A stretch of DNA of 64,000 bases, taken from contig MU008173.1 of assembly GCA_010909165.1 (NCBI GenBank), positions 248,001 to 312,000 on the forward strand, written 5' to 3'. The translations under genes were made by a program, and so were the position numbers. A model generated the notes under the pieces. It saw only the letters and a program-made list of their open reading frames with translations, was not told the DNA's origin and did not search any database. Of the stretch, positions 3,531 to 62,560 are shown piece after piece. Position 1 is the stretch's first letter. The number at the start of each line of letters is the position of its first letter. Source of the DNA: Anthoceros angustus. Taxonomy: Eukaryota > Plantae > Anthocerotophyta.

Positions 3531-3557
3531 ATCAATAACAACTTCACCAGCTTCGTT

Positions 3558-5570
3558 GAGGTAGAGGTCAAGCGTCCTTCTTAGGCCACAGCTCTAATTC
3601 CTCAACTGGTCCAAAGCCTAGAGTCTGCAACTACTGCCATAAACCCGGCCATTGGATCAAAGATTGCAGAAAGCGAATCAAGGATGAATCGATAAAAGGG
3701 AAACATCCTGTAGAAACAAACACAGCCAGAGCTTCCACTCCTGGGCTGTTGGTGACATGTTTGACTTCCTCAGCAAATGACTGTCAGAAGTGGTTTCTGG
3801 ACAGTGGAGCATCAAACCATATGTGTTCCCGACGGAAGTCTTTCCTTACCTATGAAGTCTCCTCTTATAACAGCACTGTTATGTTAGGTGATAACTCTAC
3901 ATTACCTATCAAGGGCACATGAACTATTCAAGTCACGTTGAAAGATGGCAGCTACTTGCTTTTAGAGAACGCATTATATGTACCAGCTCTTGCAAAGAAT
4001 CTGGTTAGTACGATGGCTTTGGGTAAAACTAATCAGTTCAGAATTACCTTTGAAGGTGTTGAGTGCATCATATCGAGATTGACAGCTCCGTCCGTTCCTA
4101 GTGCGAGAGGCTTGCCTCTTCATGATCTGTATCTTCTGGACTTTGTTTTTGATGTTCCTCCTGCAATAGTTAATGTCACAGAGGCTACAAAAGCATCCAA
4201 CAATGCATTCCAGTGGCACTGTCAACTCGGCCACCCCAATATACAAGCTATGAGGAGACTGCTGCGTGAGCGAATGGTAACAGGCTTCACTGAAACTGAA
4301 TTGCCTGACCTTGACTTATGTGTGGCCTGCGTGCATGGAAAACAATTCAAGTCCCACTTTGGCAGTGGGAAGCCACGTAAGGCCACAGAGATTCTGGACT
4401 TAATCCACACTGATATATGTGGACCTATGTCCATACCTTCGTGGGGAGGAGCTCGCTACTTTGTGGTGTTTGAAGATGACAGATCTCACTTTACTGTCAC
4501 CGAGCTTCTTCGCCAGAAAAGCCAAGTTTTTGATAGCTTCAAGCGCTACCTAGCATATGCTGAGAGACAGAAAGGCCTCAAGTTAAAATGCATCCGATCT
4601 GACAATGGAAAAGAATATCTATCTACAGCTTTCCAAGAGTATTGTCAGGAGAGGGGGATAACAAGACAGCTTACTATACCGTATCATTCTGACATGAATG
4701 GCCGTGCAGAGCGAAGACACAGGACCATCCAAGACGCTGCTCGAGCCCTTCTGTTCCAGGGGAGGCTTCCTATCCGCTTCTGGGCAGAAGCTGTTCAAAT
4801 GGCAACTTATCTTCAGAATAGAACGGCAGTTTCATCTCTCCATGGTTGTACTCCCTTTGAAGCATGGACAGGTTCACAACCAGATTTGTCCCATCTTAGA
4901 GTTTTTGGTAGTACAGCCTATGCCCATATTCCAGATAAGTTGCGTCAGAAGTTTGCGTTTAAGTCCAAGAGACATATCTTTATCGGGTACACTGCAGGAA
5001 TTCATGGTTATAAGCTATTCGAACCTATCAGTCGTCGAGTTGTACATGCACGTACCGTTGTTTTTGATGAGAGTCTAGTCCTCAAACCTCCTACACATTC
5101 CTTTGACGACTTTCTAGACCCTGATATTGTTGAGTTAGATAAACCAGTTCAAGAGGTAGCCACTGATATACGTGATTCTGATGTTGTTCACTTTCCTGAT
5201 TCAGATCCCTCCTTTCTGGAGCTTGATCCTCATCTGTCTGCATCTCCCCTTGTGCCACCTTTGCCTCCAGGTGATGTTGAGCCTGATTTGCCACCTCCTG
5301 TTCCTCCTGACCCACCTGATCCCCCTAATTCCGGTGAGCCTCCGGATGATTTTGTTGAGTTTGCGACTGCATCCTGCTGCTCTGTGGTTCCCGCCTCATC
5401 TCGCATCCAGTTGGTTTGTTGATTGCTGAGTGTCATACCCATACCACCACTGGCCTCGTCGTTCCTCCAGAGCAGGACCCCCGGATCAGCGTGAGCCTCC
5501 TTATCAGAGTGAAGACTTTCGGCCGTCGAAAGTTCCTCGGCCCCATGGTTCAAATAGCCTCCTCTATCTC
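3558..5570 (+). pseudogene. inverted copia segment: zinc knuckle, protease, GAG-pre-integrase, integrase, linker
   Basis: + strand reads CNYCHKPGHWIKDC (CCHC knuckle) and WFLDSGASNH (protease). ORF 3938-5422 has WHCQLGH, LIHTDICGP, IRSDNGKEY, NGRAERRHRT. Flanking gag and RT are on the - strand. Confidence 0.93.
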
Positions 5571-6322
5571 TACCACGGAAACGACCACGACCTCTACCAC
5601 GACCTGAGAAAAGGGCGGTATCACTCTGTTTATATGAGGTTGAGGAACCCCCTTTATACATAAATTTACGGTTGGCTTCCGCTTGTAATAAGGCTCCAAC
5701 AAGTTTCTGGACAGTAAGGTTAGTGGTCGCTGGTTGTGTTGCAGTAGCAGGCGTGACACTTGCGGATGCTTGTTGACTAGAACTCCACTGCTCATAACTA
5801 GGAGGCAGGGATGCTAACAACTGAATTGCTGCTCTGGACTCTGACAGGATGACTCCACATGACGCAAGTTTGGCTCTAGCGGCCCTAAACTTTGCTACAT
5901 GACTCTCTACAGAATCTGATTCTTTCATGCGGAGATTTTGGAAGGCTACTGTTGCTGCAACCTCTGTCATGATATCCTTGGACTCATAGGTATCTGACAA
6001 AAGTGACCAAACCTCGTTTGAAGTCTGAGTCAACTTGATATGAGGTATCATCTCTTGCGAGACTGATGCAACCAGTATGGTTCTGGCCTTCCTATCTTTA
6101 AACTTCCACTCAAGTTCATCCTTCATTGTCCATTGAATACTTGAACCTCCGGCGTTGCTTGCAGTAGTCTTGACCAGCAATTTTCGTGCGTACCATCGCT
6201 ATGTCCATTATGACTTCTCTTCTAAGATGCACGACCCCAAAACCTGCAGCATCGAAATTGTGAGGGGTAAGCTGGTCTTTATCCTGTAACCTATCGGACC
6301 CCGAGTCTTGTTGCCCGGACAT
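5571..6322 (-). pseudogene. copia gag (UBN2-type)
   Basis: DRKARTILVASVS, LRMKESDSVESHVAKF, LLASLPPSYE and RG-rich tail; frameshifted near the N-terminus. Confidence 0.88.
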
Positions 6323-12567: not shown

Positions 12568-13638
12568 TTCCTTGCCCTCGCGCGTTTAAAGCCGTTGTGA
12601 GGCGGTTAGCGCGGAACCATGAAGCACGCGTCGTGACGAAAATTCACCTTTGCGTGCGAGGGCAAGGAAGAACTTAAGGCACGCTTCATGCAAATCTAGG
12701 AGGACAATAAGAAGGCTGGATTCGGGCTTCGTGGGAAGACCAAACGCACCATGCAACCAAGCCGGAGTCGAAACAAGCAATGCCTCCATTTATGCCCATC
12801 CGCACCAATGGATGCACACGCGGCGAGTGGATTCAATGAGTCCATTCGGATGAAATGCCCGCGTGCCTTTAGACAAGTGACGGTGGCGAGAGCCGGATGG
12901 TGTCGCAAAGCGGAGTGGTCAACAAGATTCGTTTCTCAAACCATAAACCCTAGTTACATATCCCGCCATGGAGGCATATATAGCCCATGGAAACCCAAGT
13001 CTCCTTGGCTTTCGGGTTAGGTTAGGTACACCTTAACCCATGGGAAACATGAGTTAGGGTTTGGTTACCGAGAGGAAAACTTGAGTTAGGGTTTGGTTAA
13101 AATATCCTTCCTTGCCCTCGCCGTTTGGCCGTTGTGAGGCGGTTAGCGCGGAACCATGAAGCACGTCGTGACGAAAATTCACCTTTGCGGTCGAGGGCAA
13201 GGAAGAACTTAAGGCGCTTCATGCAAATCTAGGAGGGCAGAATAAGAAGGCTGGATTCGGGCTTTGGGAAGACCAACGCACCATGCAAATCCGAGCCGGA
13301 GTCGAGTGTGCCAAACAAGCAATGCCTCCATTTATCGCACCAATGGATGCACACGCGGCGAGTGGATTCAATGAGTGCATTCCGGATGAAATGCCGCGTG
13401 CCTTTAGACAAGTGACGATGGCGAGAGCCGGATGGTGTCGCTGAGTGGTCAACAAGATTCGTTTCAGTCAAACCATAAACCCTAGTTACATATCCGCCAT
13501 GGAGGCATATATAGCCCATGGAAACCCAAGTCTCCTTGGCTTTCGGGTTAGGGGTTACACCTAACCCATGGGAAACATGAGTTAGGGTTTGGTTACCGAA
13601 GCCAAGGAAAACTTGAGTTAGGGTTTGGTTAAAATATC
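12568..13638. repeat. tandem duplication, ~540-bp unit
   Basis: CTTCCTTGCCCTCGC...GCCGTTGTGAGGCGGTTAGCGCGG at ~12568 and ~13107 with collinear continuation. Confidence 0.9.
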
Positions 13639-16439
13639 CTTGACTTGCGAATCGCCGCTTGCCGATAATGTGTGCGCAATACTGGAATTGGGCTCGGCAT
13701 CGGCGAGGAGGATGGGCGGGGCCCCTATGGTGTCAAGTGTGACCAATGGCGCATGCCACGTGCACCCAAATGCAAGCAGGCGCCACATGGCTGCGTGCGA
13801 GCTTGGATCGATCGGTGCGAACTTGATCGATGAAAGTGCCGATCTTGCTCTCAAGTGGTCGAGACAGGACACTTTAGGGTCGAGTTTCCTTGGACTTTGA
13901 GTTCGTGAATCCATGGTTTGACGAACCATGGTTAACAAAACCCATGGTTAACAAAACCCATCGAAAATTCAAATAACATTTCCTTGGGCTTGAGCCGTGG
14001 TGGTCGGATGGTGAAGTTGCCATGGGCACCAAATCCAAGGACACTCACGCCTCGGATTGGACTTAGGGTGAAAAGAAATGTAATTACATGGCCTATATAG
14101 GCTCGCGATGAAATGGGTTTCCTTGGCTCATGAAAATTGCAAAACTTTTCCTTGGACTTGAAAAAGCAAATAACGACTCCTTGGGCTTCAAAGCCGAGTT
14201 TGGGTCGGATGGTGAACTTGGGTACCAAAGGCCAAGGACACTTACGCCTATATATGGACCGTAAATAATGGATAATAAACCCTGTGTAGTTTGTTTCCCG
14301 CCATGTTACATCCGCGAAATGAAACTTGTCTGCGTTCTGCCCGGCTCTGAGGCGAAGTCCATGTGACTGTTGTCCTCTCTTCTCCCTTGTTCCGTACCAC
14401 TTCTCGATCGCGGGGTTTCAAGCACCGCGTGACAACCCTACTTTGAAATTCTTACTACGGATCGGGCGGTGGAGGACACATCAGCAAGCGTGGTCTAAAC
14501 CGACTAAGGTTGAGGTATGTTCTCCTTTTTTTTCCTCCGCCCAATCTGTAAGCTGACCTTTCCAAAGCTCCCATGAATCACGGCCGGTCTTGTGTAGATG
14601 CCTAAAGCACGAGGAAGATTCAAGCTATGAGCGGGCCGATTCGAGACCGGCGCTGGCGCAGCATTAGTAGCGAGATCTTTCATGGAGGCCACGTGGGCCA
14701 GACGGACTAGGCTGGACCCAAATCTGGGTAATTCACGGAACAGGCGGCTGCGATTGCTCGGGCGTCAGGAGGCACGAAGGGCAAGTGGCGGCGGTGAAAA
14801 GAGCAGGCAAAGTCTCGACTTCAAGATCGGGAAAGGAGGAGGAGGACTTTGATTTGCCTCTCAAGGCTTCCGGACGCGGCAATGGAACAAGAGGGAGGAG
14901 CGCGGTGGGCAAGTTAAGGTAAGTTCCTCGTGGGTGGGAGGGTCGGATGGCCGGAGACACAGCGTGGGGCGTCATCTACGCCGGCGGGTGAAGGACCAAA
15001 AGCGAGCTGTCGGCTAGGGCATCAGCGCATGTTCGGAGAGGATGAAGACAAGCGAAGAGGCCAGTTCACAAGGATGAGTGTCGCCATATTTGAAGAAGCG
15101 GGCATGGGCTCACACCGCTCATAAAATCATGGAAGGCGATTCGAGACTTGGGCGAGGAAGGCGCCCGTGAAGGCAAAAGCGACCGGGATCAATCCCGGGC
15201 CGTTGGGGCCTATCGACTCCTATAGAAGGGGGCTCTGTGGTATGCACAAGCTGCGGATCTGCAGAGGAGGTGGTTGAGGGGCAGTCAAATGCACGGCGCA
15301 ATACATCCAGGCATCACAAATTTTACCCCCTAGATTCAAACGATTTCCATACGGAATCCATCACTTGAATGCGTCTGATTCTATGTTGAAAATATGCAAT
15401 GTTTGATAATTTTGACCAAGTTCCATGTTTAATCAACCTTGAAATTCGCTAAGGTTTCCATGTGGATTTTGGAAGTTCGGAAATTCATACTAATTCTACG
15501 TTGAAAATGTACACGATCCCACCCTTAGAGTTTTTATATGGATTCGATAATTTGGAAAAATCGAATTCTACATTGAAAACACATAAGATCGCCCCCAAGG
15601 GTTTTCATGTGGATTGTGAGCTTTGAGGTTCACATAAAGCGTGAAAATGCACGGAATCCAGCCCTTTAGGGTTTTTGTGTGGATTCTGACAGTTCGGAGG
15701 TTCGCACGAATTCTGTGTTGAAAATGCATGAGATGATTGATTGACTTTGGGCAAAGTTTTCACATCTAATCAACTTGAAAACTATGGTACCATTTTGTTA
15801 TGTGGATTATACATTAAGTTCATTCATTATCAACTCCTATGCTTGCTTTGTGGTTTCAATGTTTATTTTTATTTAATTTATAATATTTTAAAATGCTTAA
15901 AATATGTAAATTCTATGTAGTTTCAAACATTTAGGAGGATCACATAGTTTACATGTAGAAAGTACATGACATATTCATGTTTTAAGAAAAAATTCATGTT
16001 GAATCAAAGTAGCTTGTATAGAAAGCATATGTAGAAAATGTAGTATCTATTACTATCGATTCTTCATGGTGAATACATTCATTTTATAAATTATACATAC
16101 ATATTTATAATCTACAAGAATATATATGGAGTACATCTAGGTTCAAAGGCGTTGGGAGACTACACGTAGTCCCTTATGAAAGTACATTATTTGTATAATG
16201 ATGAGTTATTGAAGTTATATACATTTCAATGTAGTGTATATTCTTATTCAATAATTTTTCTATAAAATAAATAATTTTAATATATTCATTAGATACTATA
16301 TTATTAAAACAGAATATTAAATAAATAAATTAATTAGATATTAAAATATTACTTATTTATACCATATTATTATATCAAAAATATGTTTGAAAATATTAGA
16401 GAAATCTATATGCATAAAGGAATAAAAGTGTACTCCACC

Positions 16440-18200
16440 TCAAATGCCTAATAAGAAACACCGGTGCTAATATAAAACCTAGCAATCTTCTCAAAAGAAG
16501 ACCACAAAATGAGGAAAAGACAGCCATAAGTAGCAAGAGAATGTAAGGATCCGCGTTTTTGTAACTACGACATAGTTACAAACAAGCATCCTCAAAAATC
16601 TCCTAAACCACTAAGAACTAAATGAGGTGAAAACTAAATGAGGACTTGATCCTTCTCATTCGGCCCGTGCTCCAATAATCCTAGTTTCCATGTTCTTCAT
16701 GCCCAAGAGATGCTCATGCATCCTAGGAGCTTCCATTACTTTTCCATCCATTGCATATTCCAAATGCAAGAGTTTAAGTACTTAGTCGAACTATATAATT
16801 AGATATAGTATATGAAATTAATTCATGGTTGTTTCACTTACCACGTATAGGAAGAACCAGCTTGCTCCAAAGTAATTGTAATAGGCTCACGGGCATTATA
16901 CCTTGCGCCCATAAAGACTTTGGATGAGTGCCGCTTTGAGCCCCATGGGTCTATGCCGCCATTTGCAAACTCTTGAATACGCCATTTATTCCCAAGTTTC
17001 CGGACTTGTAAATTTTCAAACCAAGACTCCTTCCTGCGTGACATCCAATCACGGCTTTGGTAAGCCTAGGAGCTCATACAAATGAGCTCGCAACGCAAGA
17101 ATTGATACAACTTTAGGTCGCAAAGAAAGCGAAGATTAGGAAAGTGAACTTGAAATTCAATAAATACCTTAGTATAGCTCCCCTCCGATCGCGTATGTTT
17201 GTAAAACCATCTTCTTGTGCCCCGTTCTCCTGTTGGACCCCACGCTTTATAAAACTTACGTAATAGGGACTCGTCGATAAATCCACATCCATAGACTGAG
17301 TAAAAATCTTGCACCATTTTATCGAAGGGAACATAGTAGAATATGGACCCATTCCCAAGAGCAACTTCGGTGACAATAGTCTTGATTGGTTGGCAACAAT
17401 AGCCGGGTTGCAACAGTTTCTCTAGTTGTGATAGGGCATGTATATTTGACTTTTGCAAGACATAAATTGTCTCTTTGTGCTCAAGCTTGTCTTTGAGATG
17501 CTCGAGTGTGACCTTGTGAGACATTTGGCTCTTCTTCACTCAACCCTTGTTCGAGTTGAGCAAAGATCTTCGCTCGGGACTTACTGCTCAAGACCGGTCC
17601 CATCAGCAGCTTGGAGACCGGGTGCTTGTCCACGGGCGCTTGCCACCGGTCTACTACCGGCAATTGGTGACCCTTGCGCTTGTACAGACTTGCCACGTGA
17701 TGTCTACTACGAGCAATTGGAGAGAGCGTGTTTGTCCATCACCGACTTGTCGCTGAGGTCGATATCGGCAATTGGAGATTGCCGAGCTATCACACTTCCG
17801 AGATCTCGCAATGATACCGCTAGTTGAAATTGTTGTTGCACTTACACGTCGATCGGAGCTTGCAAGTCTCACAGTGCAATAATAGGCCTTTGTTGTGCAA
17901 TGGTAGTAGCATATCTCATTGTGCAATGGCGAGCAGTGCAATAGCAGATTCACATTGTTGCGCCGGTGCATCCGATCGCTCAACAAGATGGCGATTCTTG
18001 TGCGCCTGTGAGTCGGAGAATCTCCTCCTCGCACAAGACTCTACGAATAAATGGCGTTTGGCCAAGGAGAGCAAGGAAGAAGGCGGCCTTGATTTGGAAA
18101 CGGAGGTCTTCCTCTAAGCGGTCCCTCGTGAACTTGAAGTCTCAACATCAACATCTTCAACTTGTTCCTTTCTTGATGCGAACTTCTTCTTATCTCAAAT
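16440..18200 (-). pseudogene. degenerate ORF with weak CMC/TNP2-like transposase character
   Basis: Fragments IFYYVPFDKMVQDFY, GGIDPWGSKRHSSKVFMGARYN and LSGLGDF*GCLF loosely resemble DGxxPF..S...YN and downstream Cys motifs; many stops. Confidence 0.33.
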
Positions 18201-18363
18201 GACGGCTGAGTCCGGCCGATCGATGCTGCTTGTAAGCCTTGGCATCGCACAACAACAAACCAAATCAAAACAAAAGAGGCAAAAGGAGCATTCAACATTA
18301 CAATAATCAGAATGCTGATCGACCTCGAGATCCGCACGTTGGTAAACCTTCCCGATCGATCGA

Positions 18364-21300
18364 CTCAAGGCTGATTTCACACACCACGCAATTCCGCTCA
18401 ACGCATTCCGCCAGCACTCCGCTCGGCGAACTCCCGCTCCGGCGCCTCCGCTCGGCGAACTCCGCTCGGCGAACTCCCGCTCCGGCGCACTCCGCCCGGC
18501 GAACTCCCGCTCACGCACTCCGAGCCGAGTCGATGGCGAACCTTTGAAAGAAGCAGCAAAATAGAGAGAGAGGTTCCGCCCAGCCCGTGATGAAAAGAGG
18601 GCTCGCCTGCCTCCCGCCAAGATTCTCGCATTCAGACATGCCCACTGCCAAGATTCGCACAGAGCTGCTGCTCCTGACATTTTCGCACTTGATTATAGGG
18701 TCAATCCTTGTAACATTTCGGACATAGAATCGGTGCACATTTTTAAGAGCGATTGACTTTCATATATGCTAATGAATCTGGTGGAAATAGCAGCAAGCAC
18801 CGAGGGCTTGCGGGAGCTTGAAGTTGTGAGCTTGGCAAATATCTTGAGGATTGTTGCATTGTCCTTCAAGAACGTGTCATTGTGCATCATGTCAAGGGCA
18901 TTGAAAGCGTCATAGTCGTTATGCCATGATCGAGCATCATTCATGAGTTGTAGAAGCGGGTGATTGCAACACTGTAATAGGAATAAGCTGCCTTCAATTC
19001 GGATATGAGCGGAATGCACGTGATAAACGCAACTAGCTTCTTAGAGCCCTTGGCCCTAACCCCTATGTGCCGATTGGTGAAGTAACGGAGGTCTCGACGC
19101 CGCAGAAAATCCACGGAATAATCAAATCGAACATGTTGTCATCATCCTCCACATGGTTATTCGTCAGAGAGTGTAGATCTCCTCACCAAAGCCACCGAGA
19201 GAAGGAAGGGCGTTAGACGCTCATCCTAAGATTTGTTAAAAAGGCGGTCTTCAAAGGAGCAAGTCATCAGCTCACGATTGCAATGACCTCCTTGAACTCG
19301 GTCCCCATGGATCCCACCACGTAGTCCGGAAGTGGAATGCATCCCCTAGGTTATGATTCGACATTGCAAACCAACCACCGTCGTGAAACAATCTAGCATA
19401 TGTAGTTCGAGCTCGACTCAGGCGTAACCCAATGCAAGGAAGTGAACTAAGAACAGTTCCTTCCACCTTACATGTACAAATCCCTAAGTGGAATGCATCC
19501 CCTAGGTTATGATTCGACATTCATGCAAACCAACCACCGTGAAACAATCTAGCATATGTAGTTCGAGCTCGACGTAACCCAATGCAAGGAAGTGAACTAA
19601 GAACAGTTCCTTCCACCTTACATGTACAAATCCCGCAGTAGCTCCCCACAAATCCACGGAAGGAGTTGCCGCAGTGCTGTAGTGGACCAGTCGCAAGCAG
19701 CCGCAAGGGCCCGGGCTTCACTCTTGTATCCCTCAACCTCTTGGCCAAAAGTTCGCCTTTGCCATGCTTTTCCCACGAGGTGCCCTTGATGGAGATGTGC
19801 TCCATTGGTGTTGGTGGACAGAGATTGGATCACTCTTGAAACATGTGGTCGCCCCATCCCATTATTCAACACCAGCTTCTTGATGCAAGGCTTGTTGTGC
19901 TTCAACCCCTGGAACAACTCCTCGGTGAAGTTGCACCGTAGGGTTTCAAAACACGAACTGCAGATCAAGCTTCACGCACTTGTGCAAGATAGGCATCGAC
20001 AGGATCCAGCTCCTCCTCATCCAGGGAATGGCCGTGCTCCAAGACAAGGTGCGTGATGCTGCTGTAAGCCACAAGTGATGCCACACAAAATAGCCGCCAC
20101 GCACAGGAGCTTCAAGGTGGTGTTGAGAGTAGCATTCCAGCCACCGCTTCTTGAGCCTACCCTCCAGTGGCTGCCATCCTCACCTCCAACCCGGATACTT
20201 CAAGCCACAACCCGGGTGATGGATTGGTTAAGTGAGCACATGTGAGACCGTGAGACTACAACTCCGACCAGCTCGAGGAGGGCACCGCCACTCAAGGCTG
20301 ATTTCACCGCACACGCAATTCCGCTCAACGCATTTCGCCGCACTCCGCTCCGGCGCACTCCGCCCAACAAGCTCTCCCGCGGACTCCGCCCGGCGAACTC
20401 CCGCTCCGGCGAACTCCGCTCCGGCGCACTCCGCTCCGGCGAACTCCCGCTCCGGCGCACTCCGAGCCGAGTCCGATGGCGAACCTTTGAAAGAAGCAGC
20501 AAAATAGAGAGAGGATTCGCGCCCAGTGCGTTAAAAGGCTGGCTCGCTCCTCGCCAAGATTCTCGCAAATTACAGCCACTGCTCGCAGATTCTCGCACAT
20601 TACAGAGCCCTGCTCGCCAAGATTCTGCACTGATTATAGGTCAATCCTTGTAACATTTCGGACATAGAATCGGTGCACATTTTTAAGAGCGATTGACTTT
20701 CATATATGCTAAATGCTGGTGGAAATAGCAGCAAGCACCGAGGGCTTGTGAGCTTTGTGAGCTTGGCAAATATCTTCCGAGGATTGTTGCATTGTCCTTC
20801 AAGAACGTGTCATTGTGCATCATGTCAAGGGCATTGAAAACGCCATAGTCAGTCGTTATGCCATGATCGAGCATCATTCATGAGTTGTAGAAATCGCAAC
20901 ACGTAATAGGAATAAGCTGCCTTCAATTCGGATATGAGCGGAATGCTGTGATAAACGCAACTAGCTTCTTAGAGCCCTTGGCCCTAACCCCTATGTGCCG
21001 ATTGGTGAAGTAACCAGGAGGTCTCGACTAAAAAATCCACGGAATAATCAAATCAACATGTTGTCATCATCCTCCACATGGTTATTCGTCAGAGAGTGTA
21101 GATCTCCACCAAAGAGAAGGAAAAGGTGTTAGACGCTCATCCTAAGATTTGTTAAAAAGGCGGTCTTCAAAGGAGCAAGTCACGGCTCCCGATTGCAATG
21201 ACCTCCTTGAACTCCCCATGGATCCCACGTAGTCCCTAAGTGGAATGCATCCCCTAGGTTATGATTCGACATTGCAAACCAACCACCGTGGAAACAATCT

Positions 21301-22045
21301 AGCATATGTAGTTCGAGCTCGACGTGCAACCCAATGCAAGGAAGTGAACTAAGAACAGTTCCTTCCACCTTACATGTACAAATCCCGCAGTAGCTCCCCA
21401 CAAATCCACGAGGAGTTGCCGCAGTCAACTGGTCGGACTCAGTCCGCAAGCAAAAGCGTTCCGGCTTCACTCTTGTATCCCTCAACCTCTTGGCCAAAAG
21501 TTCGCCTTTGCCATGCTTTTCCCACGAGGTGCCCTTGATGGAGATGTGCTCCATTGGTGTTGGTGGACAGAGATTGGATCACTCTTGAAACATGTGGTCG
21601 CCCCATCCCATTATTCAACACCAGCTTCTTGATGCAAGGCTTGTTGTGCTTCAACCCCTGGAACAACTCCTCGGTGAAGTTGCACCGTAGGGTTTCAAAA
21701 CACGAACTGCAGATCAAGCTTCACGCACTTGTGCAAGATAGGCATCGACAGGATCCAGCTCCTCCTCATCCAGGGAATGGCCGTGCTCCAAGACAAGGTG
21801 CGTGATGCTGCTGTAAGCCACAAGTGATGCCACACAAAATAGCCGCCACGCACAGGAGCTTCAAGGTGGTGTTGAGAGTAGCATTCCAGCCACCGCTTCT
21901 TGAGCCTACCCTCCAGTGGCTGCCATCCTCACCTCCAACCCGGATACTTCAAGCCATAAGCGGGTGATGGATTGGTTAAGTGAGCACATGTGAGACCGTG
22001 AGACTACAACTCCGACCAGCTCGAGGAGGGCACCGCCACGGGGCT
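18364..22045. repeat. tandem duplication, ~1.8-1.9-kb unit, each with a 14-16-bp GC-rich microarray
   Basis: CTCAAGGCTGATTTCAC at ~18364 and ~20291; ACTCC(C)GCTC(C)GGCG(A/C) arrays at 18415-18525 and 20341-20468; identical ORF fragments in both copies. Confidence 0.9.
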
Positions 22046-22907
22046 CAAGGCACGCAAGATAGGAATCAACATAGCTGCCCGCTCGGATTCTTGTGCCGGT
22101 CATATCCGATATCAAGCCTCGCCGAGCGTGGTGGTGAGCGCCACGCCTGCAATCGCCCACCCTCATGGTCCATGCCTATCCCAAAGAGTCCCAAGGTTCG
22201 CAGAGCGGCGAGTGGGTGAGGATGGCGAACGCGTCACCGCAGCTCCCTATCATATCGTTGTCGCCAAGATACAACTTGTCGAGTAGTGAGCCGCTCTTGT
22301 CTCGCAAGGTCGGAGATGAGCCCACACTCACCCAATTGCCCGCATATCCGGATACTCCAACTGCAACCGGTCGTAGGAGCAGCAAGTGCACACGCCTGCC
22401 GTCCCGAATCCTCCGAACCCGCATAAGCTCAGTTTTCCACTGGATTGTGCTTCAACCCTTCAGCTGTTGCTCCACGCCGCTCACTACTGCATTCCCACGC
22501 CTCAAGGGATTCAGATCGATGGTTCTCGTGCGCTGCCGATCGCTCATGATGCGCAAGCGCAGATGGCGCCTCGATTTCCCCAACGCTTCATGTTCGCCAT
22601 GCTCAAGAAGTAGGAGCCCTGTGAAGCCGCAGATCCGGAGGAGGAAGCGCAGTGAAGCTCGGCGATCGGGACTCGAGGCTCTCACAGGCAACCAAAGCGG
22701 CGGAAGAGGAGGAGGAAGAGGTCGCTGCCATAGCGCCAACTCGGCATTCGACCTCCCGCCGATCCTATGTAATATTATGGCTTCCGATCCTTGTAATAGG
22801 ATCCAGATAGGATCGGCTTTGGCATTCGACCTCGAAGCGGCTATTGCTTGCCGGATCAAACATTCCCGAGCATACCCAAGCCGAGCCTGCATTCCGACCT
22901 CCCGCAA
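19272..22907 (-). pseudogene. captured leucine-rich-repeat (RNI/F-box-LRR-like) gene fragments
   Basis: SITHLVLEHGHSLD, ELFQGLKHNKPCIKKLVLNNG, AEGLKHNPVEN and LLDKLYLGDNDMIGSCG show LxxLxLxxN-like periodicity; frameshifted. Confidence 0.45.
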
Positions 22908-22981
22908 GCTGCAGCTATGGCCTTGCCCGGAGTTGCGCTGTCCGGTTGCAATATGTCACACCCTAAATTTTAGCAACTGCT

Positions 22982-23118
22982 GAAACCCGAAATTGGAAGT
23001 GCTCAAAACTCAACCCATTGAAACTCAAAACTGGAAGTGCTCAAAACTCAACCCGTTGAAACCTCGAAACTAGAAGTGCCCAAAACTCAACCCGTTGAAA
23101 CCTCGGAGTGGAAGTGCC
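22982..23118. repeat. 38-39-bp tandem repeat x3.5
   Basis: Unit GAAAC(C/T)..AAACTGGAAGTGCTCAAAACTCAACCCGTT. Confidence 0.9.
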
Positions 23119-23386
23119 TGAGGGCCGAGCTTCTCCGCCACTCACCTTCTAGCTTTTCCGCTGGGCTCGGCCTTGTGGGCTCGGTTTCTGCTTCATTATG
23201 ATCTTCACATATATGTACTTCTAGCTTTTCTCGTGGACAGGCTCACTGGCCTGCTTGTGGCTTGCTTCTTCATTATATACTTTAATTTGCAGTGTGATCC
23301 AAGTGGTCGCCTATGGGTTTGGATTGTGAGAGATGTGGGTCTGTGAACTTCTAATTTAGGAGCTCTACGGTCTCATCAACTTCAAA

Positions 23387-25955
23387 GTGCTAGGTGTAAG
23401 ACAAGGCATGCAAAGACTCCGCTTAGAATCAATACCACATGAAACCAGATATGGGGGACATATAGTTGCTATGAATGAGCAAGGTATGCAATATGTGCAA
23501 GCGGAGTATGATAGGCATCAGGAGCATGTGGACGAAAGGCAGCCAACTGAGACTGAAAGTTTAGGAGTGAGTCTCACATTTGAAAGAATAGTGGATACCA
23601 CTTCTTCTCTTGTGAAACCATTTGATGCCACACTGAGTATGGTACATTTCTTACGCAATTGTAGAAATGGTGCAGGGTTGTCTAATCGAGATATAAATGC
23701 TCCGCTTGGTTCAAGTCTTTGTCTCATCCTTCGCTCAAGCCGGAGGACCTTGTGAAGTGCTACAGATGTGAGAAAGTATGAGGCTTCTTTGGCAGGCTCA
23801 CAGGATGGATGGCATGAGGTTTTAGTGAATGAACCCGGAGACAATACACTCACATTGCAATATCGAGATTCGAGTGAAGTATTGAGGGAACTATTTGGGG
23901 CTTCAGCCAATAGGGAAGGTTTTATACGGCGGACTCAAATTGAAGCTAGCGAGACTTACACCACACCAGATATCGGGAAGTGGTGGAAATCCATGCAGAG
24001 TCTAGTTGATAGCAAGTGTGAAGGTGGAGTTGTGGCAGGACTGATTTTATATTCTGATCAGACTAGTTTATCCAATGACAGATCGTGTGGTCATCCTTTG
24101 ATGATGAGTCTCGGCAATATCAAATGTGAGCTCGCCGAGCCGAAGGGCATGCTCTTCTAGCCCTCTTACCAATCATACCATCCGAGATACATACAAGTTC
24201 GGGGCAAAGTGCAAGGAGGAAGTTAAAGGCCTTTCAACGTTGCTTGGAGATCATTCTCAAAACTGTAAAAGATGCTTCCTATAGTGATTGGAAATGGATG
24301 ATCCCTTGGGAGACAAGCAATGGGTATTTCCAATGATATACTTATATATTTGTGATAGTTTGGAGGGCTGCAAGGTTACTTGCACATATGGTTCTAACAA
24401 GTGTCAAAGGCCCCGCAGATTTGTCTTGTGAAGAAACAGAACCGAGCATGGTGCAAGTCCGCCGAGTCATGACAGATGCATATGAAGATTTATGAAGATA
24501 CGAATGCAACCAAATGCGGAGAATCTGATCACCTCGAACGTTGGTCATTATATGCGTGGAGTGTGCTCTTTGGGGATTCAATGGCGGATTGATGAGTTGG
24601 GAAATCCATACCTTTCTATCCACCCGGATCTTTTACATCAAAGTGAGCGGGGTCTTTTCAAGCGCATGGTAGGAATCCTTGTGGAAATGGTGAGGAACCC
24701 GCTTGAGCAACATTTGCCGAGTAGAAAGCCATTGAAAGAAATGGATCGACGATTACAATTCATTGCAAACAAACCACATATGCCGAGTTCGGACTACCGT
24801 AATGACAAAGGAGGGTATTTCTCATCACAGGCTAATTTCGCCGCATTTGAACATAGAGCGTTGATGCAAGTTGTTGTCTTCTGCATGCTTGGTGTATCCC
24901 AACACGATAGTTAAGGTGTTTGTGAAGTTTTTGTCATGGTACAACTTGCTTTCTGGAGTTCATCACATACTGAGGCAAGCTCGCAAGAAGTGGATGACTC
25001 ATGGTAGATTTGGTGGATTTTTGAAGTTGCATATGAGTAATCGCGTAAATCTGAGTTTGGAATACTCAAGGTGCATTTGATGTCACATTTTAGTGATGCA
25101 ATTAGAAGGTCGGGACTAGCATGGGAATTTAATACCAACATGTTTGAGAAGATGCATATTGCTCTTATGAAGATCCCTTATAGAGCATCCAATCGGAGAA
25201 ATGTTGTAGCTCAACTTGTCCATCACCAGCAACGACTAATAGCTTTAAGAAGACAAGCTCACCAGAGAGAGGGGTTTGAAGTTGAAGAGGAGTCAGATGA
25301 CACTGCTTTGGATGAAGCTGTCCGAACGGGTAAGAATGTGTTTAGCAGGACATCGATGTGTCACTTCCAATTGACTAAACTCTATCTCCCAAGTGATTCT
25401 ACTCAATTGACTAACAAGGTCGAAGTTCTTAGATGGCCACCGAGGTGAGAGCCGAATTCCAACATGCCTTAGATGTGTATCTAAGGGACCAAGGGCTTGA
25501 TGAAGTGACTCAAATTGTAGTCAAGAAAGCCATGGCGATACCTGGAGTGGGTGATCGGTTTGGATCCCGGCCTATGTATGTGCGTGCAACACAAGATTTC
25601 TTTGCGGGCCATGGTTTAGTGATGTGGCTTTACGGATGGAGGCATGGATCGGATCCAATAACTTGGTACGGGCAGCTTAGACGATGTTTGTGTGCAATAG
25701 TGCCTTGGGGAAGATGAGGTTGTGGAGCGAAAATTATGCTTTGTGCGACTTTACCAAGAAGTTCACGAGAATGCATCGAATAGATTGGTCCAATGCAAGG
25801 AACTAGTGTGGGCATCAACGAAGCTCGGAGAGCACCGGCATAGAAGCCGTCGGGTTCCAAGCTATCCGGTGATAGATGCTTCAAACATACTCGAGGCTCC
25901 ATCTAATCCCTCACTTCAATGCAGAGATTGACGTTCTTTCCGAACCACTATAAGT
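23387..25955 (+). pseudogene. Plavaka-family (CMC-related) transposase, frameshifted
   Basis: Ordered motifs LQYRDSSEVLRELFG, GKWWKSMQ, LILYSDQTSLS..GHPLMMSLGNI, ICDSLEGCKVTC, HPDLLHQSERGLFK, FNTNMFEKMHIA and C-terminal VIDASNILE.VHLIPHF..FFPNHY match the Plavaka transposase pattern as I know it. Confidence 0.82.
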
Positions 25956-26104
25956 TAACGCTGTCTTGTGGGGAATGAGTTGGCTGTTGGACCCAAGCCC
26001 GAATTTGGCAAACTCTATCTCGCTTTGTTGATAGTGGGGCAACTTTCAAGACCGCTAACCTCAAACCTCGGAGCATTTGGGGGTCCAAGTACAGCAATGA
26101 CGAT

Positions 26105-27000
26105 TGATACATTATCTAATGCTTGGAGATGTGTCTGCATTTTGGATAATGTCTGTAGGTGCACGAGATTAGAACTCTCCTGACTCCACGTATTGAAGCT
26201 AGGTGGCCTGCAAACTTTGCTGGCCACCTAGCTTTTCAACAATCTTACAGATTGTTGCACAAGGCCTTGATGAGACTATGGGAGAGGAAGAAGAGCAAAG
26301 TCAAGCCTCCAAGGGACTTCCCAGAGTCAGCAACGTTGATGATTTCCAGGGGGAAGAGAGTGATATAATTCTTCTTTCTTTGGTCCGCAGCAACCACCTG
26401 GAGGTTAAAGATGGCCCTGGCAAGATCGGGTTCCTGAGCGTATCCAACAGAGTAGTATCTTCATATGAACTAGTGAACCTTCATACTGATGAGCTCAGAG
26501 AAAGCTTACTGGGAACAGAAACAACAGATGCACGGATCACGTAAATTCCGGTTTGTGCAGCAATACCCCTCGATGAGTTTCCTTGGTGACTTGCTTAGCT
26601 TCATTTTCTCCGCTTTCCAGAGATCGGACAAACTGCTTGACAAGGACAACATTGTCACAAAAACATGGCCACTACAGCTGCTTGGTAAGACGAGTTCCTT
26701 GCAGCCCGTCACATCTCGTCTTTCACGAGCAGAAGTACCAAATCTGAACGGTGACATTCCCGCGAAGAATTGAACTTGCCTCTACTTACGGCTGCCAAAT
26801 GTTGTGCTTCAACTGGGTGTGTTTTGTGGGTTGTCGCATTGTTGTGGCGGGCTTCAACCCACCTTAAGATTTTGGTTTTGCACCGCCAATGCCGCCTGGG
26901 AGATGCGGAGGCCTTCGTTAGAGCACCAAGGTGCGACTGGGCCTGTGAGGCTCGCAGTGCTTGTCGTGGAAGTCGGTCGCTAGCCGGGTGCGGTCGGTGA
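26105..27000 (+). pseudogene. ZNFX1/NFX1-type SF1 helicase C-terminal fragment (AAA_12) followed by Cys-rich zinc-finger remnant
   Basis: HEIRTLLTP, RVSNVDDFQGEESDIILLSLVRSN...GKIGFLSVSNRV, then CRLGDAEAFVRAPRCDWACEARSAC. VDxFQGEExDI.ILSLVRSN..IGFL...NRV is typical of ZNFX1-like helicases. Confidence 0.7.
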
Positions 27001-28245
27001 GCTTTGGAGGGCGGCAGGTGGGGTACTATGAAAGTCAATGTCGAAGTCACTAGTCGCATGATCTGCAGCGGGTAGGGACAGGTTTTCTAGTCTATGTCGG
27101 TAGGTGCTAGGAGCAGGAGCACTTGTGGCAACAAGTCTTTCTGGACCGTACTATGTGGTGGGACAATAGACGAGAGAAGAAGAGCTCCCATTCACCGACT
27201 TCCTTAAGGGGTCCTGAGGTCTTGTGGTGTCCTGTGGTTAAACAACATGCTTAAGCCAGCTTGGATCAATGAAAAGCTCGATTCAAAAGGTGTGAGGATG
27301 GATCAAAGCCATAAGGTCCCGAGTGTTGGCCCATTTTGGCTCAATGTTTGAGATGTACTACAACTTTGAGAGGATGTATGGTAGTTCTAGACTACATATC
27401 ATGGTCACCGGAGCTAGCCTCACCTTCTCGGCCAGCGTGGGAGGCCGACCTACATGATCCCGTCGTGGAGCGATTCGGGACCAACTACCCCAAGGTACAC
27501 ACCACCGCCAAAGTGAAGGGACTATTCAACACGTTTGTGCTTTATGTTGTAGTCAATGAAAACATTTGATGAGTCATCACCTCATGTGGTGGGAAGACTT
27601 TGGAACCTTTGCTAGGAGATGGGATCTTTAATTCGGATGGGGAGAAGTAGAAGAAGCAACGGAAGATGACCAGCCATCCAAGGTCCTTCGTGATTTCAGG
27701 TCGTAATGAAGCAATGCGCTAGCTCTTGCCTGAGTAAAGCATACGGATGAGTGCCCCCATCGAGCCTTCTGGTAAGCTCATGCTGGCTCTACCACTTTTC
27801 AGCTTTTCAGTGTGGCGCTCGACCCCGATCCTCTAGCTACATACTTATGTATTGGGCGAATCGCATGTGGAGAAAGTGAGCCCAGTCGTTGTTGCTTGTC
27901 TTGTTAATAAAATTCCAGTCTTCGGTGGTGGACCGTGGAAGTGAGCTCGCTTGGTGTGTGTCCAGGATTCTATGAGGGGCTCTGCTAACCTCGCCTTAGG
28001 AGTCAACTCGCAAGCAAAGCCTCCAGAAGGTAAGGAGCCCAAGACTTCCGAGAAAGTGTGGGTAGGGACGGGTTTTCCAGCTACGGTCGTTGTGAGGGAG
28101 CACTTGCAGCAATTTTTGTGGACCACCTGTGGTGGGACAATGACGAGGTAAGAAGAGCGCTGCTTCGACTTCCGCAAGGGGTCCGGCGAGGTGTGTGCTT
28201 AAGCAACATGTTTAACCCTTTTGGGTTGATGAGCACCTCATGTGC

Positions 28246-31100
28246 ATGGATCTGCAGATGGGACATGGTACCTCTCCTTCCGCCCACCTCCCGGATGAGC
28301 CTAAACCGGGAGGCGTGCAGGATCGGCAATGGGTGTTGTTCTGCTACCGTGAGCACGCGCGTCGCAAGCTCGATGCCGTTGGAGCCTGAATCGCGAAGAC
28401 AGTAGTCCGCCATTTCGGCCTCTGTGTAATCGTACTAAACTGCGTAAAGAAGGATTTGGTTGTGGGGTGTCGAATTCATGATCTCACCGCCAAACTTGGG
28501 TACGAGACGAGTGCATACGTGGGGAACCATATCATGCGCATGTATGCATGTGGAGGTAGGCTGCAGGAGGCCATGGGTTCACCGGTGGGCAAACCGGATG
28601 TCTTCATGTGTTTTTCCATAATCTGCACATGCTAATTACGGAAACCTGGGAGGCAATACAACTGCATACCATGAAATGGGTAGGTCGAGTGAAGGCGATG
28701 CTCATGTCTTTGTAGCTGCCCTTCAAGCTTGTGCATTTGCCGACTGAATCTGGCGAGAAAAGTGCACCGCGATGTAGTGAGTGGCATTCCTACTAACTTG
28801 TTTGTTGGCCTTGTGGACATGTATGCAAAATGTGGCGAACCAAAAATGGACGCTGTTTTGACAAGATGGCCACAAAGGATGTGGTGACATGGATCTGCAG
28901 ATGGGACATGGTACCTCTCCTTCCGCCCACCTCCCGGATGAGCCTAAACCGGGAGGCGTGCAGGATCGGCAATGGGTGTTGTTCTGCTACGTGAGCACGT
29001 TATGTCGCAAGGAAGCTCGATGCCGTTGGAGCCTGAATCGGCGACAGTCCGCCATTTCTGCCTCGCACCTGTACAAAAGCGTACAGCCTAAGAAGGATTT
29101 GGTTGTGGGGTGTCGAATTCATGATCTCACCGCCAAACTTGGGTGCAGACGAGTGCATACGTGGGGAACCATATCATGCGCATGTATGCATGTGGAGGTA
29201 GGTGCAGGAGGCCATGGGTTCACCGGTGGGCAAACCGGATGTCTTCATGTGTTTTTCCATAATCTGCACATGCTAATTACGGAAACCTGGGAGGCAATAC
29301 AACTGTACCATGAAATGGGTAGGTCGGGAGTGAAGGCGATGCTCATGTCTTTGTAGCTTCTTCAAGCTTGTGCATTTGCCGACTGCGCGTAAAAGTGCAA
29401 AAGTGCAGTGTAGTGGCATTCCTACTAACTTGTTTGTTGGCAACGCCTTGTGGACATGTATGCAAAATGTGGCGAACCAAAAATGGACGCTGTTTTGACA
29501 AGATGGCCACAAAGGATGTGGTGACATGGATCTGCAGATGGGACATGGTACCTCTCCTTCCGCCCACCTCCCGGATGAGCCTAAACCGGGAGGCGTGCAG
29601 GATCGGCAATGGGTGTTGTTCTGCTACGTGAGCACGTTATGTCGCAAGGAAGCTCGATGCCGTTGGAGCCTGAATCGGCGACAGTCCGCCATTTCTGCCT
29701 CGCACCTGTACAAAAGCGTACAGCCTAAGAAGGATTTGGTTGTGGGGTGTCGAATTCATGATCTCACCGCCAAACTTGGGTGCAGACGAGTGCATACGTG
29801 GGGAACCATATCATGCGCATGTATGCATGTGGAGGTAGGTGCAGGAGGCCATGGGTTCACCGGTGGGCAAACCGGATGTCTTCATGTGTTTTTCCATAAT
29901 CTGCACATGCTAATTACGGAAACCTGGGAGGCAATACAACTGTACCATGAAATGGGTAGGTCGGGAGTGAAGGCGATGCTCATGTCTTTGTAGCTTCTTC
30001 AAGCTTGTGCATTTGCCGACTGCGCGTAAAAGTGCAAAAGTGCAGTGTAGTGGCATTCCTACTAACTTGTTTGTTGGCAACGCCTTGTGGACATGTATGC
30101 AAAATGTGGCGAACCAAAAATGGACGGGTTTTTGACAAGATGGCCACAAAGGATGTGGTGACATGGAATGCTCGATTGCCGTATGCAAAATGTGGCGAAT
30201 CGAAAGATGCACGGATTTTGACAGATGAACAGAAAGGATGTAGTGACATGGAATGCTCGATTGCCGGGTACACGCAAGGGCTTGGACAAATGCGCAAGAG
30301 GGCTTGCTTTTGGCTAACCATGTTACTTTGCTTGCCTTCAAGGCTTGTGGAAGCACGATGCCTCAGTAGGGCAGTGTGCACTATTGTCGAAAGAGGACTG
30401 GGCGAAGTGGTGGGCAACCGCCTTGTGGACATGTATGTGAAATGTGGTAAACTAGAAGATGCCGTGTTTTGACAAGATGGCCACAAAGGATGTGGTGACA
30501 TGGAATGCTCGATTGCCGTGTATGCAAAATGTGGCGAATCGAAAGATGCACGCCAGATTTTGACAAGATGAATGAGGAAAGGATGTAGTGACATGGAATG
30601 CTCGATTGCCGGGTACACACCGCAAGGGCTTGGACAAATGCAAGAGGGCTTGCTTTTGGCTAACCATGTTACTTTTGCCTTCAAGGCTTGTGGAAGCACC
30701 GATGCCTTCTAAGGGCAGTGCACCCTGCATTGTCGAAAGAGGATCCGACGAGTGGGCAACCTTGTGGACATGTATGTGAAATGTGGTAAACTAGAAGATG
30801 CCCGTGTTTTGACAAGATGAACACAAAAGATGTTTTGACTTGGAATGCCCTCGACTGGGTAGGCACAAGAAGGGCTCGGCCAAGAGGCGCTTGTTATGTA
30901 TGGACAAATGGAGGAGGCGGACTGCTTTTGGCTGACCATTTTACTTTGCTTGCTCAAGGCTGTTCAAGCAATCGGTGCCTGGAAGGGCATGCACTGCTCA
31001 CAGATTGTCGAAAGAGGATTGCTAGTTAATGTAGTGGTGGGCATCTGCGTGGACTGCTTGCAAAATGTGGTGAACTGGAAGATGCATGCCAGTTTACCAT
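28246..31100 (+). pseudogene. PLS-class pentatricopeptide repeat gene fragment, in tandem degenerate copies
   Basis: GNHIMRMYACGG, AIQLYHEMGRSGVK, LVDMYAKCG, FDKMATKDVVTWNA, DMYVKCGKLEDA; three ~637-bp copies starting at 28246, 28889 and 29526 plus shorter copies. Confidence 0.88.
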
Positions 31101-31234
31101 ACCCTGAAAGAGATGGAAACTTCATCCCGGATCCCTCTATTCTGTCTCTGCAGACACCCCTTAAACACCTTGTTCATAGGTCAAGCGTGAGGGGCCCATG
31201 ACCCTGTGAGCCCAAAGATAGAAACAAATGCCTT

Positions 31235-31375
31235 GGGTTCCAAGCTATGTGGTGATAGATGCCTCAAACATACTCGAGTTCATCTAATCCTCACTTCAAT
31301 GTAGAGAGACGTTTTTCCGAACCACTATAAGCTCGAACATTGCGGTTGTGGGAATGAGTTGCTCGACCCAAGCCT
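31235..31375 (+). repeat. second copy of the Plavaka transposase 3' end
   Basis: GGGTTCCAAGCTAT..GTGATAGATGC.TCAAACATACTCGAG...CCGAACCACTATAAG...GACCCAAGCC recurs from 25852-25998. Confidence 0.85.
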
Positions 31376-33069
31376 TGGGTCAAGCAGAATCGAGTTAGCA
31401 TTCTAGCTTGGCAAACTCTATCCCGCTTGTCGGCAGCAATGTTCGTTGCACGCCATGCTTTCAACCGAGGAATGAAGTTGGAAAACAAACAGTCCGCAAC
31501 CCATGTGTTAATGTCAAACATAGACACCGATGCGGATCCCTAGTCTCGAATCTTGAATATATTTGATTTCGATGGAGTTTCCATATAGCTCATCCACGAG
31601 ATTGCTATATTAAAAATATTTCTATTAATATATTATACTATAGAGTCCTTGAATATGGAACCTCAAATATATGTTATGTCGATGGAGTTTCCATATAAAA
31701 CATTCATGAGGTTGTTTAATTATTTAATATATATTAACTATATATATAATTTATCATAAAATAGTATTATTATTAGATATTTATGTTACATGTAATCAAT
31801 ATGGAATATGATCGTTTAATCAACATACTATCCACATGAGATTTATATAGTTTCTATTAAAAAGAAACAATATGAGCATCATAAGGTATTTTGACATGGA
31901 AATCAACAATATATCAAAACATGGAATAAATGTTGAACATGTGTGGAGTTTGCTGCAAGGTAACATGCAATCTATATTGTATCGCCACGGAATCTTTGGA
32001 AACCTTTTTCAACATTGAATCCATACAACAATTTGAGACGAACTTCTGTGGTGAAACCATATTGAAAAATACCATTTTTCTCATTGAATCTACACAGAAA
32101 TGATCCACACGGCAACCGTGCAGAATCTGGGGGGGATAAAATTTGTGATGGGAGTGCACAAGATCCTTCCGCCCAAACCATATAAGCCATACATCTTTGC
32201 GTTGCAGCGTTACCTTAGGGTAACCATGATGCACTATTGGTAGAAGTTGAAGAGAGCAATTGAATTTGAACCCGCAGAGAACGTTAAGCTTGAAGCTATC
32301 AACATGGTACTGACGGAAGACAACATCATGTGGTCTAATTTTGTGAAGCATGTGAAGTCTGAGAGAAGGAGCACAAACACAGCCCTCCTAAAGCTGTAGG
32401 ACACCTTAAAACAATGTTCATCTTCAACTAGTCGGCGGGACTTGGAGGGTGGCGAACATGAGCAAGCAAAAGTTGCTATACCCGAGGAGAAGGATCGATC
32501 TTCCTCATGATCTTTGTGGCGAGGAAGATCTTGATATCATTCCAATGGAATGTCGAGATTTGGACATAAAGTGCTCTAGGGGCCCAAGAGGAAAAGGGTG
32601 CACGATGTCCATCACGAAGTGCTGCCCACATCCATCCTTGGTGGTATCTTCAATGTTTTGGTGGCATTTTAGTTTGAGCGAAATTTCGGGCACGAAATTT
32701 CGGGCACGAAATGTCGAGCACATGTGGGGGCTGAAATTTTAGGCCGCATGAAATTTTGGGGCACGAATTTCTTCTTCGGAAATTCTCTGAACGGGCAGAT
32801 CTAATGCGATTTGGAGGCTCAAGGGCATCGTTTTATGCCTCATTTGGAGGCTATGCACTAAACATGCTGCTGGTCTTTGTGTCGAGCTACATCTTCGTGG
32901 ATCCCTCCTTTTGCCCATGAAGGACAGAGTGCATTTTGCAACCCGCTCTCTGCAATCCTCTCATACATCCCTTTTGGAAGCAAAGCCGTGTGTGCTTCAT
33001 GTTGAGACATGTATCGAGACTTTGAGTGGTCCATGGTCTTTTTATTGTATTGTCTTGCAATTTGAACCC

Positions 33070-62031: not shown

Positions 62032-62560
62032 GGTGATGTAGGGCCCGACCCCTCGGGATTTGTCCCCTACCTGACCTCCTTGCCTGTCATGAGGGTAGTG
62101 CAGCGATGGCGTGAGTCGAATTGACTCACCCTCAAAAAAGGGAAGGAAGGAAGGATCTGTACCCGGTGGCGCGGAAGGAAATTCGCCTCCTGGTCGTAAA
62201 TCTGCAGAACTACGTAGCAAAGCCTAACTTGGATTCTCTGAAATTTTTGTAATTCTTTACCACCCTAAATTATTCCTTGTTTTGCTGAATCAAAATGAAC
62301 CATCGCGACGCCTGGCTGGCCGGCCGTCTTTCACTGAGTGCTCTCTGTGCTACCACGGCCTGATCGGGGCCTTCTCCTCAAGAGCTGATTTGCTGGTGGA
62401 GACAGCAAAGATGTGGGCCGTCCAAGTCCCGGACCCTGAATCAGGTTTCATCCATCTCTGCCCGTTGATTGGCAAAGTGCGTTCGCGGTGTAGAAAATTC
62501 TCGTGCACCTCATGACATGATACCTGTCCTTGTCCAGACGCGCTTCTCTGAGCCGCAAAA

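Follow-up and report, generated by a model that had tools for sequence, protein, structure and literature searches.

Plavaka elements are DNA transposons that were named in fungi. They share a wider clade with the plant CACTA (En/Spm) elements, which, together with the Pack-CACTA elements and those of the soybean Tgm type, combine short terminal inverted repeats (TIRs) with subterminal arrays, and which capture and shuffle fragments of host genes. Such gene-fragment capture is also well known in MULE and Helitron elements. The sublineages PlavakaA and PlavakaB have been defined, with their termini and duplications, by Kojima 2025 (PMC12730594). PlavakaB, found in Agaricomycotina fungi, has the termini 5'-CATCA..TGATG-3' and a target site duplication (TSD) of 2-3 bp, and fungal PlavakaB ends begin CATCAGAAATTTGG and CATCACGAAACAGG (Figure S2, PMC12730594). 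In the red alga Bostrychia moritziana, giant Plavaka elements of 17.4-19.1 kb, mostly degenerate, carry the accessory genes PAG1-3 (methylase/SET and ParB-like/oxygenase included) and fill a third of the genome (bioRxiv 10.1101/2025.02.11.637652). The Spirogyra pratensis genome paper of 2026 reports Plavaka in red algae, chlorophytes, streptophyte algae and a moss, and infers its presence in the ancestor of Archaeplastida and that it subsequently disappeared from land plants, where only a moss is noted (PMC13519894). The element described here occupies positions 15312-32150 of a 64-kb stretch of contig MU008173.1 (hereafter the window, that is, the whole stretch of DNA that was analysed), and it is very probably one decayed PlavakaB-like cut-and-paste transposon that carries fragments of host genes in a seed-free land plant.

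The element harbors a single transposase gene on the plus strand, at 23387-25820, delimited by Pfam PF18759 and by tblastn with a liverwort protein. The preliminary description of this locus had proposed a Plavaka-like transposase and asked for a Pfam search, and this search bears the proposal out. The open reading frame (ORF) piece at 23756-24157 matches the Pfam Plavaka family (PF18759) with E=1.7e-10 and 41.1 bits (cutoff 26.3) over profile positions 39-145, and the profile is continued colinearly by weak matches in two other frames, at 24130-24333 (profile 152-199) and 24288-24428 (profile 204-241). No other transposase family is reported by Pfam for the transposase pieces, at E<=0.1 or at E<=1. 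Residues 28-840 of the 840-aa protein CAM6089392.1 of Calypogeia fissa, which itself carries PF18759, align colinearly along 23387-25820 in tblastn (E=1e-103, 35-38% identity). Candidate catalytic motifs are a D at 24041-24070 (LYSDQTS), a D at 24339-24368 (YICDSLEG) and an E at 24621-24653 (HPDLLHQSERG); after the second D, where the Calypogeia protein has the cysteine cluster CSLPCSCCLC, the aligned region holds a stop and a degenerate stretch instead. Six in-frame stops (23753, 24429, 24483, 24912, 25005 and 25038) and four frame changes (near 24135, 24285, 25400 and 25700) interrupt the gene. It is therefore a pseudogene, and this copy is incapable of moving by itself, a state that had previously been overlooked.

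The ends of the element are defined by inverted repeats. A repeat finder pairs 15312-15330 with 32132-32150 over 19 nt with one mismatch (95% complementary), and the pairing is prolonged by a 2-nt indel through AGATTC, giving a left TIR of 26 nt on the plus strand (15312-15337), which begins CATCAC, and a right TIR of 28 nt on the minus strand (32123-32150), which finishes GTGATG. When the 19-nt terminal pattern is searched with up to three mismatches (<=3), only two sites appear in the 64-kb window, both of them the element ends, in inverted orientation; by chance 0.03 sites would be expected, and two matches were reached in none of 100 shuffles. The left junction reads ...CCAGG followed by CATCACAAATTTTACCCCCTAGATTC, and the right junction reads GAATCTGGGGGGGATAAAATTTGTGATG followed by GGAGTG..., so that GG at 15310-15311 equals the GG read from the sequence at 32151-32152. 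A duplication of 3 bp is impossible at this insertion (AGG vs GGA). With CATCAC at 15312, GTGATG at 32150 and a 2-bp GG duplication, seen at one insertion, the element shares with the PlavakaB of fungi a Plavaka-type DDE transposase, the CATCA..TGATG termini and a TSD of 2-3 bp, and the further terminal bases are alike as well (fungal CATCAGAAATTTGG vs CATCACAAATTTTA in this element). Its putative place in a PlavakaB-like sublineage is assigned from the termini only. It differs from the fungal elements in its land-plant host, in its size of 16.8 kb, in its long AT-rich ends with oriented arrays and in about 11 kb of host fragments, and the TET/JBP dioxygenase gene was not found in it.

The position of the boundary deserves closer consideration, as both of two possible 2-bp duplications are present, AT/CAC...GTG/AT and GG/CATCAC...GTGATG/GG. 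The preliminary description had preferred the first, which puts the element at 15315-32147, its termini being CAC...GTG and its duplication AT, and had mentioned the second as an alternative. Its inverted TIRs, its CAC...GTG and its AT at both ends are all present, and CAC...GTG termini are common in the CACTA/Mirage/Chapaev (CMC) clade (PMC12730594). The second boundary, which gives an insertion of 16,839 bp, is nevertheless favoured, because AT/AT then follows automatically from inverted-repeat ends of the form CAT/ATG, whereas CAC with AT needs both the outer C:G pairing (1 in 4) and the GG/GG match (1 in 16) to arise by coincidence, about 1 in 64. The second boundary is favoured also because its termini and TSD length fit the published PlavakaB, with its CATCA..TGATG ends (PMC12730594), and the inverted-repeat finder likewise reaches 15312 and 32150. 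Modest support comes from another copy, whose similarity to the element reaches 15312 and stops there. The narrower boundary is thus quite unlikely to be the right one and is probably 3 bp off at each end, and the CATCAC...GTGATG boundary with its GG duplication is the better of the two.

That other copy was found by comparing the contigs of three public runs with positions 13500-19400 of the window (5,901 letters). One of them, run X1, is likely to derive from the same species as the window, since 34 of its 77 placed contigs are at least 99% alike. A 617-nt contig of this run aligns with 15312-15686 (about 94%) and goes on beyond it for 225 nt that are unlike the window flank, and on this alignment it is apparently another copy of the element, with similarity ending at 15312. 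The copies observed are, then, one complete insertion and one further left end, the comparison with run X1 covering the left side of the element only. Self-BLAST detects no further copies of the element or of its flanks in the 64-kb window. The terminal 19-mer has 12 exact matches in JGI metagenome contigs, which were rejected as chance, as in no case does the similarity go past the pattern, and BLAST aligns none of them with the element. It has also been noted that a CATCACAAAA TIR with a 2-bp TSD may lie on another piece of the same genome; this agrees with the reading given here but is an unverified lead.

It had been argued, in addition, that excision of the element restores a reading frame of a host element into which it had inserted. 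Removing the element and one copy of the duplication does leave an open frame of 58 codons between stops, and, the two boundary readings being 6 nt apart, this frame stays open with both of them. An open stretch of 58 codons is, by an estimate from stop-codon frequency, expected in about one of three frames some 17% of the time, and the frame has no homologue or Pfam match, so that it is not evidence for a restored gene. The host element itself finds no support either, as none of the 54 flank ORFs matches Pfam and no second copy of the flank exists in the window.

Inside the TIRs, both ends carry AT-rich regions with short repeated motifs. All five plus-strand sites of TRTGGATY in the window fall at 15461-15801, spaced by about 70 bp, and two of its six minus-strand sites fall at the right end, at 32025 and 32109. 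For ATTCWRYRTTGA, all four plus-strand window sites lie at 15378-15710, and the sole minus-strand site is at 32020. The left subterminal array, at 15378-15810 on the plus strand, hence contains every plus-strand site that the window has of both motifs, about 70 bp apart, and inverted subterminal motifs occupy 32014-32109. These counts agree with what had been described as AT-rich subterminal motif arrays in opposite orientation: the ends and the opposed arrays are real, and the array is richer on the left. The left AT-rich terminal region (15312-16750, GC 31%) is repeated in the genome, and the right one spans 31230-32150 (GC 35%). Contigs of run X1 span 15312-16762 at a word depth of 8-59 and the unique flank at 14485-15272 at zero; in this low-coverage run, the left terminal region is covered and 16849-18621 is uncovered. 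A family core that is repeated and a cargo that is rarer would fit such a pattern, contig word depth being no measure of copy number.

Non-transposon DNA makes up about two thirds of the element and consists of broken and tandemly duplicated fragments of host genes that amount to about 11 kb. When all 121 ORFs that reach 55 codons and lie outside the transposase are scanned with Pfam, only NMT, NMT_C and AAA_12 are reported. Inside the left terminal region lies a segment at 16751-18362 that is about 90% conserved in a related species (contigs of organism B span 16751-18179), and for which no match was found in Pfam, PDB or the atlas. It is followed by a tandem duplication of a unit of about 1.9 kb at 18363-22039, whose copies (18363-20291 and 20290-22039 in self-BLAST, 87-97% identity) contain N-myristoyltransferase (NMT) fragments and a stretch resembling leucine-rich repeats (LRR). 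The NMT fragment at 18861-19182, on the minus strand, has its second copy at 20686-21027. It was recognised by Pfam (PF01233, E=1e-6, 29.2 bits with a cutoff of 25, on 18944-19138; NMT_C, E=2.9e-4, on 18696-19040) and by PDB, where the fragments match human NMT1/2 chains at E=0.002-0.007, and it had been overlooked before. A 10.5-kb contig of the related species (runs X2/X3) has in common with the element only the NMT blocks 18862-18998 and 19010-19183, with diverging sequence to either side; the two blocks are separated by 557 letters in that contig vs 11 in the element. In the captured NMT copy, a parental intron may be missing or a deletion may have occurred.

The LRR-like stretch, at 19524-19971 on the minus strand and duplicated at 21183-21720, is possibly of RI type and was located by an atlas feature search, where its nearest clusters are LRR_6 with scores of 0.84-0.89. 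This is a weak lead from a language model, and Pfam and PDB give no match for the LRR-like stretches, so that the LRR cargo claimed earlier is unconfirmed. The other two cargo genes then claimed, ZNFX1-like and PPR, are confirmed. A C-terminal fragment of a ZNFX1-like helicase is encoded at 26203-26541 on the plus strand (PF13087 AAA_12, E=2.1e-9), and its only PDB match is ZNFX1 (9q9z_A, E=3.1e-6) over about 45 residues. Further right, at 28245-31200 on the plus strand, lie frameshifted tandem repeats of about 640 bp (three copies) and about 339 bp (2.3 copies), recognised by their repeats, a motif and PDB matches. They contain LVDMY[AV]KCG five times with frame breaks after each, and the Pfam PPR matches are below threshold (E=0.06-0.3). 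Their predicted derivation from PLS-class PPR genes is settled because the ORF at 29960-30469 matches PPR-DYW and PLS9-PPR proteins in PDB (synthetic PPR-DYW 9kfx, E=7.6e-23; PLS9-PPR, E=1e-12). Two longer ORFs, at 22138-22980 (281 aa) and 17069-17539 (157 aa), have no Pfam, PDB or atlas support and are probably not genes. A 38-bp tandem repeat of 3.6 copies lies just upstream of the transposase (22981-23117).

Fragments of unrelated host genes, namely NMT, the ZNFX1-like helicase and PLS-PPR, are thus found between the ends, as in Pack-type elements, and the element differs from typical Pack elements in that this copy retains a nearly full-length, dead transposase gene. Compared with the giant Plavaka of Bostrychia, it has the same kind of transposase, a similar size and a decayed state, but those elements owe their large size to the conserved PAG1-3, none of which was detected here, where the bulk is made of broken host-gene fragments. 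The 5.2-kb block formed by the helicase and PPR sequences sits between direct repeats of about 190 bp of the element's own sequence, both on the plus strand. The first copy (25847-26030) comes just after the transposase, and the second (31230-31435), which is about 80% identical to it, stands at the inward end of the right terminal region, as revealed by self-comparison. We infer that these bracketing repeats are a trace of the entry of the cargo.

It could be objected that the two ends come from separate nearby elements, or are solo ends, and that what lies between them is ordinary host DNA. A duplication of 2 bp says little in favour of a single insertion, an empty site did not turn up, and two thirds of the DNA between the ends does not resemble a transposon, all of which would suit this explanation. 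The interior gene pieces, on the other hand, are short, broken, rearranged and tandemly duplicated, and do not look like genes in place; the right cargo block is flanked on each side by a copy of a stretch of about 190 bp that belongs to the element itself; and the ends are correctly oriented around a single transposase gene, with matching GG duplications. Separate ends are for these reasons a very unlikely explanation, and a single insertion with internal cargo is preferred.

The origin of this insertion was addressed through the relatives of its transposase. A HMMER search of 1.84 billion representatives with a 134-residue piece of the transposase retrieved 66 proteins at E<=0.001. The named relatives are, in order of score, Calypogeia (a liverwort), Klebsormidium nitens and, with many proteins, Closterium (both streptophyte algae), and then fungi, where Diversispora matches at E=1.6e-6 and Ceratobasidium and Panus near 1e-3. 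A quick maximum-likelihood tree of 31 sequences and 372 columns, in which the window is represented by a read-through translation with an X at each break, places the window sequence in one group (SH-aLRT 88) with Calypogeia and with four metagenome/Logan proteins that carry no label. Two basidiomycete proteins are separated by a branch with 98% support, and Diversispora stands on a very long, unplaced branch. These results fit an old streptophyte lineage, as judged from protein similarity, and not a recent arrival from fungi. Recent horizontal transfer, which had been raised earlier together with a phylogeny to examine it, is unsupported, because the nearest relatives are streptophytes. The locus accordingly appears to belong to the same lineage as the Archaeplastida candidates (PMC13519894), given its nearest relatives in Klebsormidium, Closterium and a liverwort, and differs from them in that both ends, the duplication and the internal anatomy are visible here. 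A word-index search with the Calypogeia protein matched only that protein, and exact-protein look-ups of a window ORF and of P0039 returned no record. In Closterium sp. NIES-65, two 8.5-kb copies that are 97% identical (L002 9326-17843 and L003 9326-17995) contain, besides a Plavaka gene, another ORF that is 458-476 aa long and matches no Pfam family, and their shared block has no clear inverted ends.

The same data bear on the proposal that the element is a canonical plant CACTA transposon (En/Spm, TnpD-type) or a recent horizontal arrival from fungi. Subterminal arrays near short TIRs and the capture of host-gene fragments do resemble plant CACTA and Pack-CACTA elements, with which it shares the wider clade, and Plavaka was first described in fungi. 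But the termini are not CACTA...TAGTG, the duplication is of 2 bp and not 3, and TnpD (PF02992) is absent, Pfam reporting PF18759 only. As to fungi, the best relatives are those of Calypogeia, Klebsormidium and Closterium, fungal proteins match at E 1e-6 or more weakly, and the basidiomycete proteins are split off by the strongly supported branch. Either version of this proposal is already largely refuted and extremely improbable.

Several observations weigh against the interpretation of 15312-32150 as a single PlavakaB-like insertion. It relies on a single complete element plus one additional left end, and two flanking bases would agree by coincidence in 1 of 16 cases. The contig stop at 15312 and one at 15315 would differ by 3 nt, which is at the resolution limit of local alignment. 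No empty site was found in the 64-kb window or through the flank ORFs, and the continuity of the two flanks is thus unsupported. The cargo was assigned by similarity, the parent genes of the same genome having lain outside the comparison. The catalytic residues are likewise assigned by similarity only, and the putative E aligns with a D in the Calypogeia protein. Around the relatives in Calypogeia (with or without a CATCA start) and Closterium, no clear inverted repeats were detected. With these points taken into account, the most probable account is still the one first described, a land-plant DNA transposon of Plavaka type, related to the CMC elements, whose ends can be defined and which has a TSD of 2 bp and fragments of host genes inside.

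By analogy with the family, a Plavaka DDE transposase would recognise the CATCAC termini together with the short subterminal repeat arrays, and the element would have been excised and reinserted through a 2-bp staggered cut that leaves the GG duplication. As this copy is decayed, any movement of it would depend on transposase from an intact relative. The right cargo block may have been acquired by faulty gap repair or by unequal recombination inside the element, and the host-gene fragments would be passengers and not working genes.

The surroundings of the element offer some further observations. About 1 kb from its left end, 13894-14287 is a repeat with a run X1 contig depth of 39-138, which contains an internal duplication of about 95 bp (13963-14052 and 14160-14249, 77% identity). 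On either side of the element, at 2553-6198 and 47834-52446, long ORFs look by eye like Copia-type sequences (integrase/reverse transcriptase-like and gag-like). Two apparent host genes encode a plastid-type class I fructose-bisphosphate aldolase (60536-61717) and an AIF/FSP1-like FAD oxidoreductase (62552-63652), the latter as a single open frame of 367 codons. The aldolase exon is about 90% identical to seed-plant proteins, and the best named matches of the AIF-like oxidoreductase (about 48%) are in a lycophyte, Ginkgo, mosses and ferns; no close annotated relative emerged from these host-gene searches, and on sequence grounds the host is taken to be a seed-free land plant, probably a liverwort or something near it. 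Between the window (13500-19400) and the related-species contigs, G>A and C>T changes dominate, with 43 and 34 of 179 differences in X2, a bias to be expected of repeats that are methylated and decaying. Scans of the 64-kb window with Rfam and for tRNAs returned nothing.

The preliminary description had regarded the element as the best candidate for an undescribed system, which is too strong a claim, since Plavaka is already described in algae and a moss (PMC13519894) and giant forms are described in a red alga (bioRxiv 10.1101/2025.02.11.637652). No paper on Plavaka in liverworts or ferns, or on gene-fragment capture by Plavaka, was found in the literature searched. What this element adds is modest. 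It is structurally complete, comes from a land plant, has ends of PlavakaB type and carries fragments of host genes. Against the published inference of loss in land plants, it presents both ends, the duplication and the subterminal repeats of a Plavaka in a land plant. It gives annotators of bryophyte genomes a model, made of ends, TSD length and motif arrays, for elements that probably stand in current annotations as CACTA or 'unknown'. The element further shows that gene-fragment capture occurs in the Plavaka lineage too, without revealing a new mechanism. A bolder proposal, rather improbable, is that bryophyte Plavaka elements form an undescribed gene-fragment-shuffling ('Pack-Plavaka') system, in which fragments are acquired between the element's own duplicated stretches and recurrent PPR pieces next to the transposase are propagated family-wide and perhaps expressed as chimeric transcripts. 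If this were true, the near-identical termini of fungal and land-plant elements would mean a very deep conservation of the interaction between the transposase and the ends of the element.

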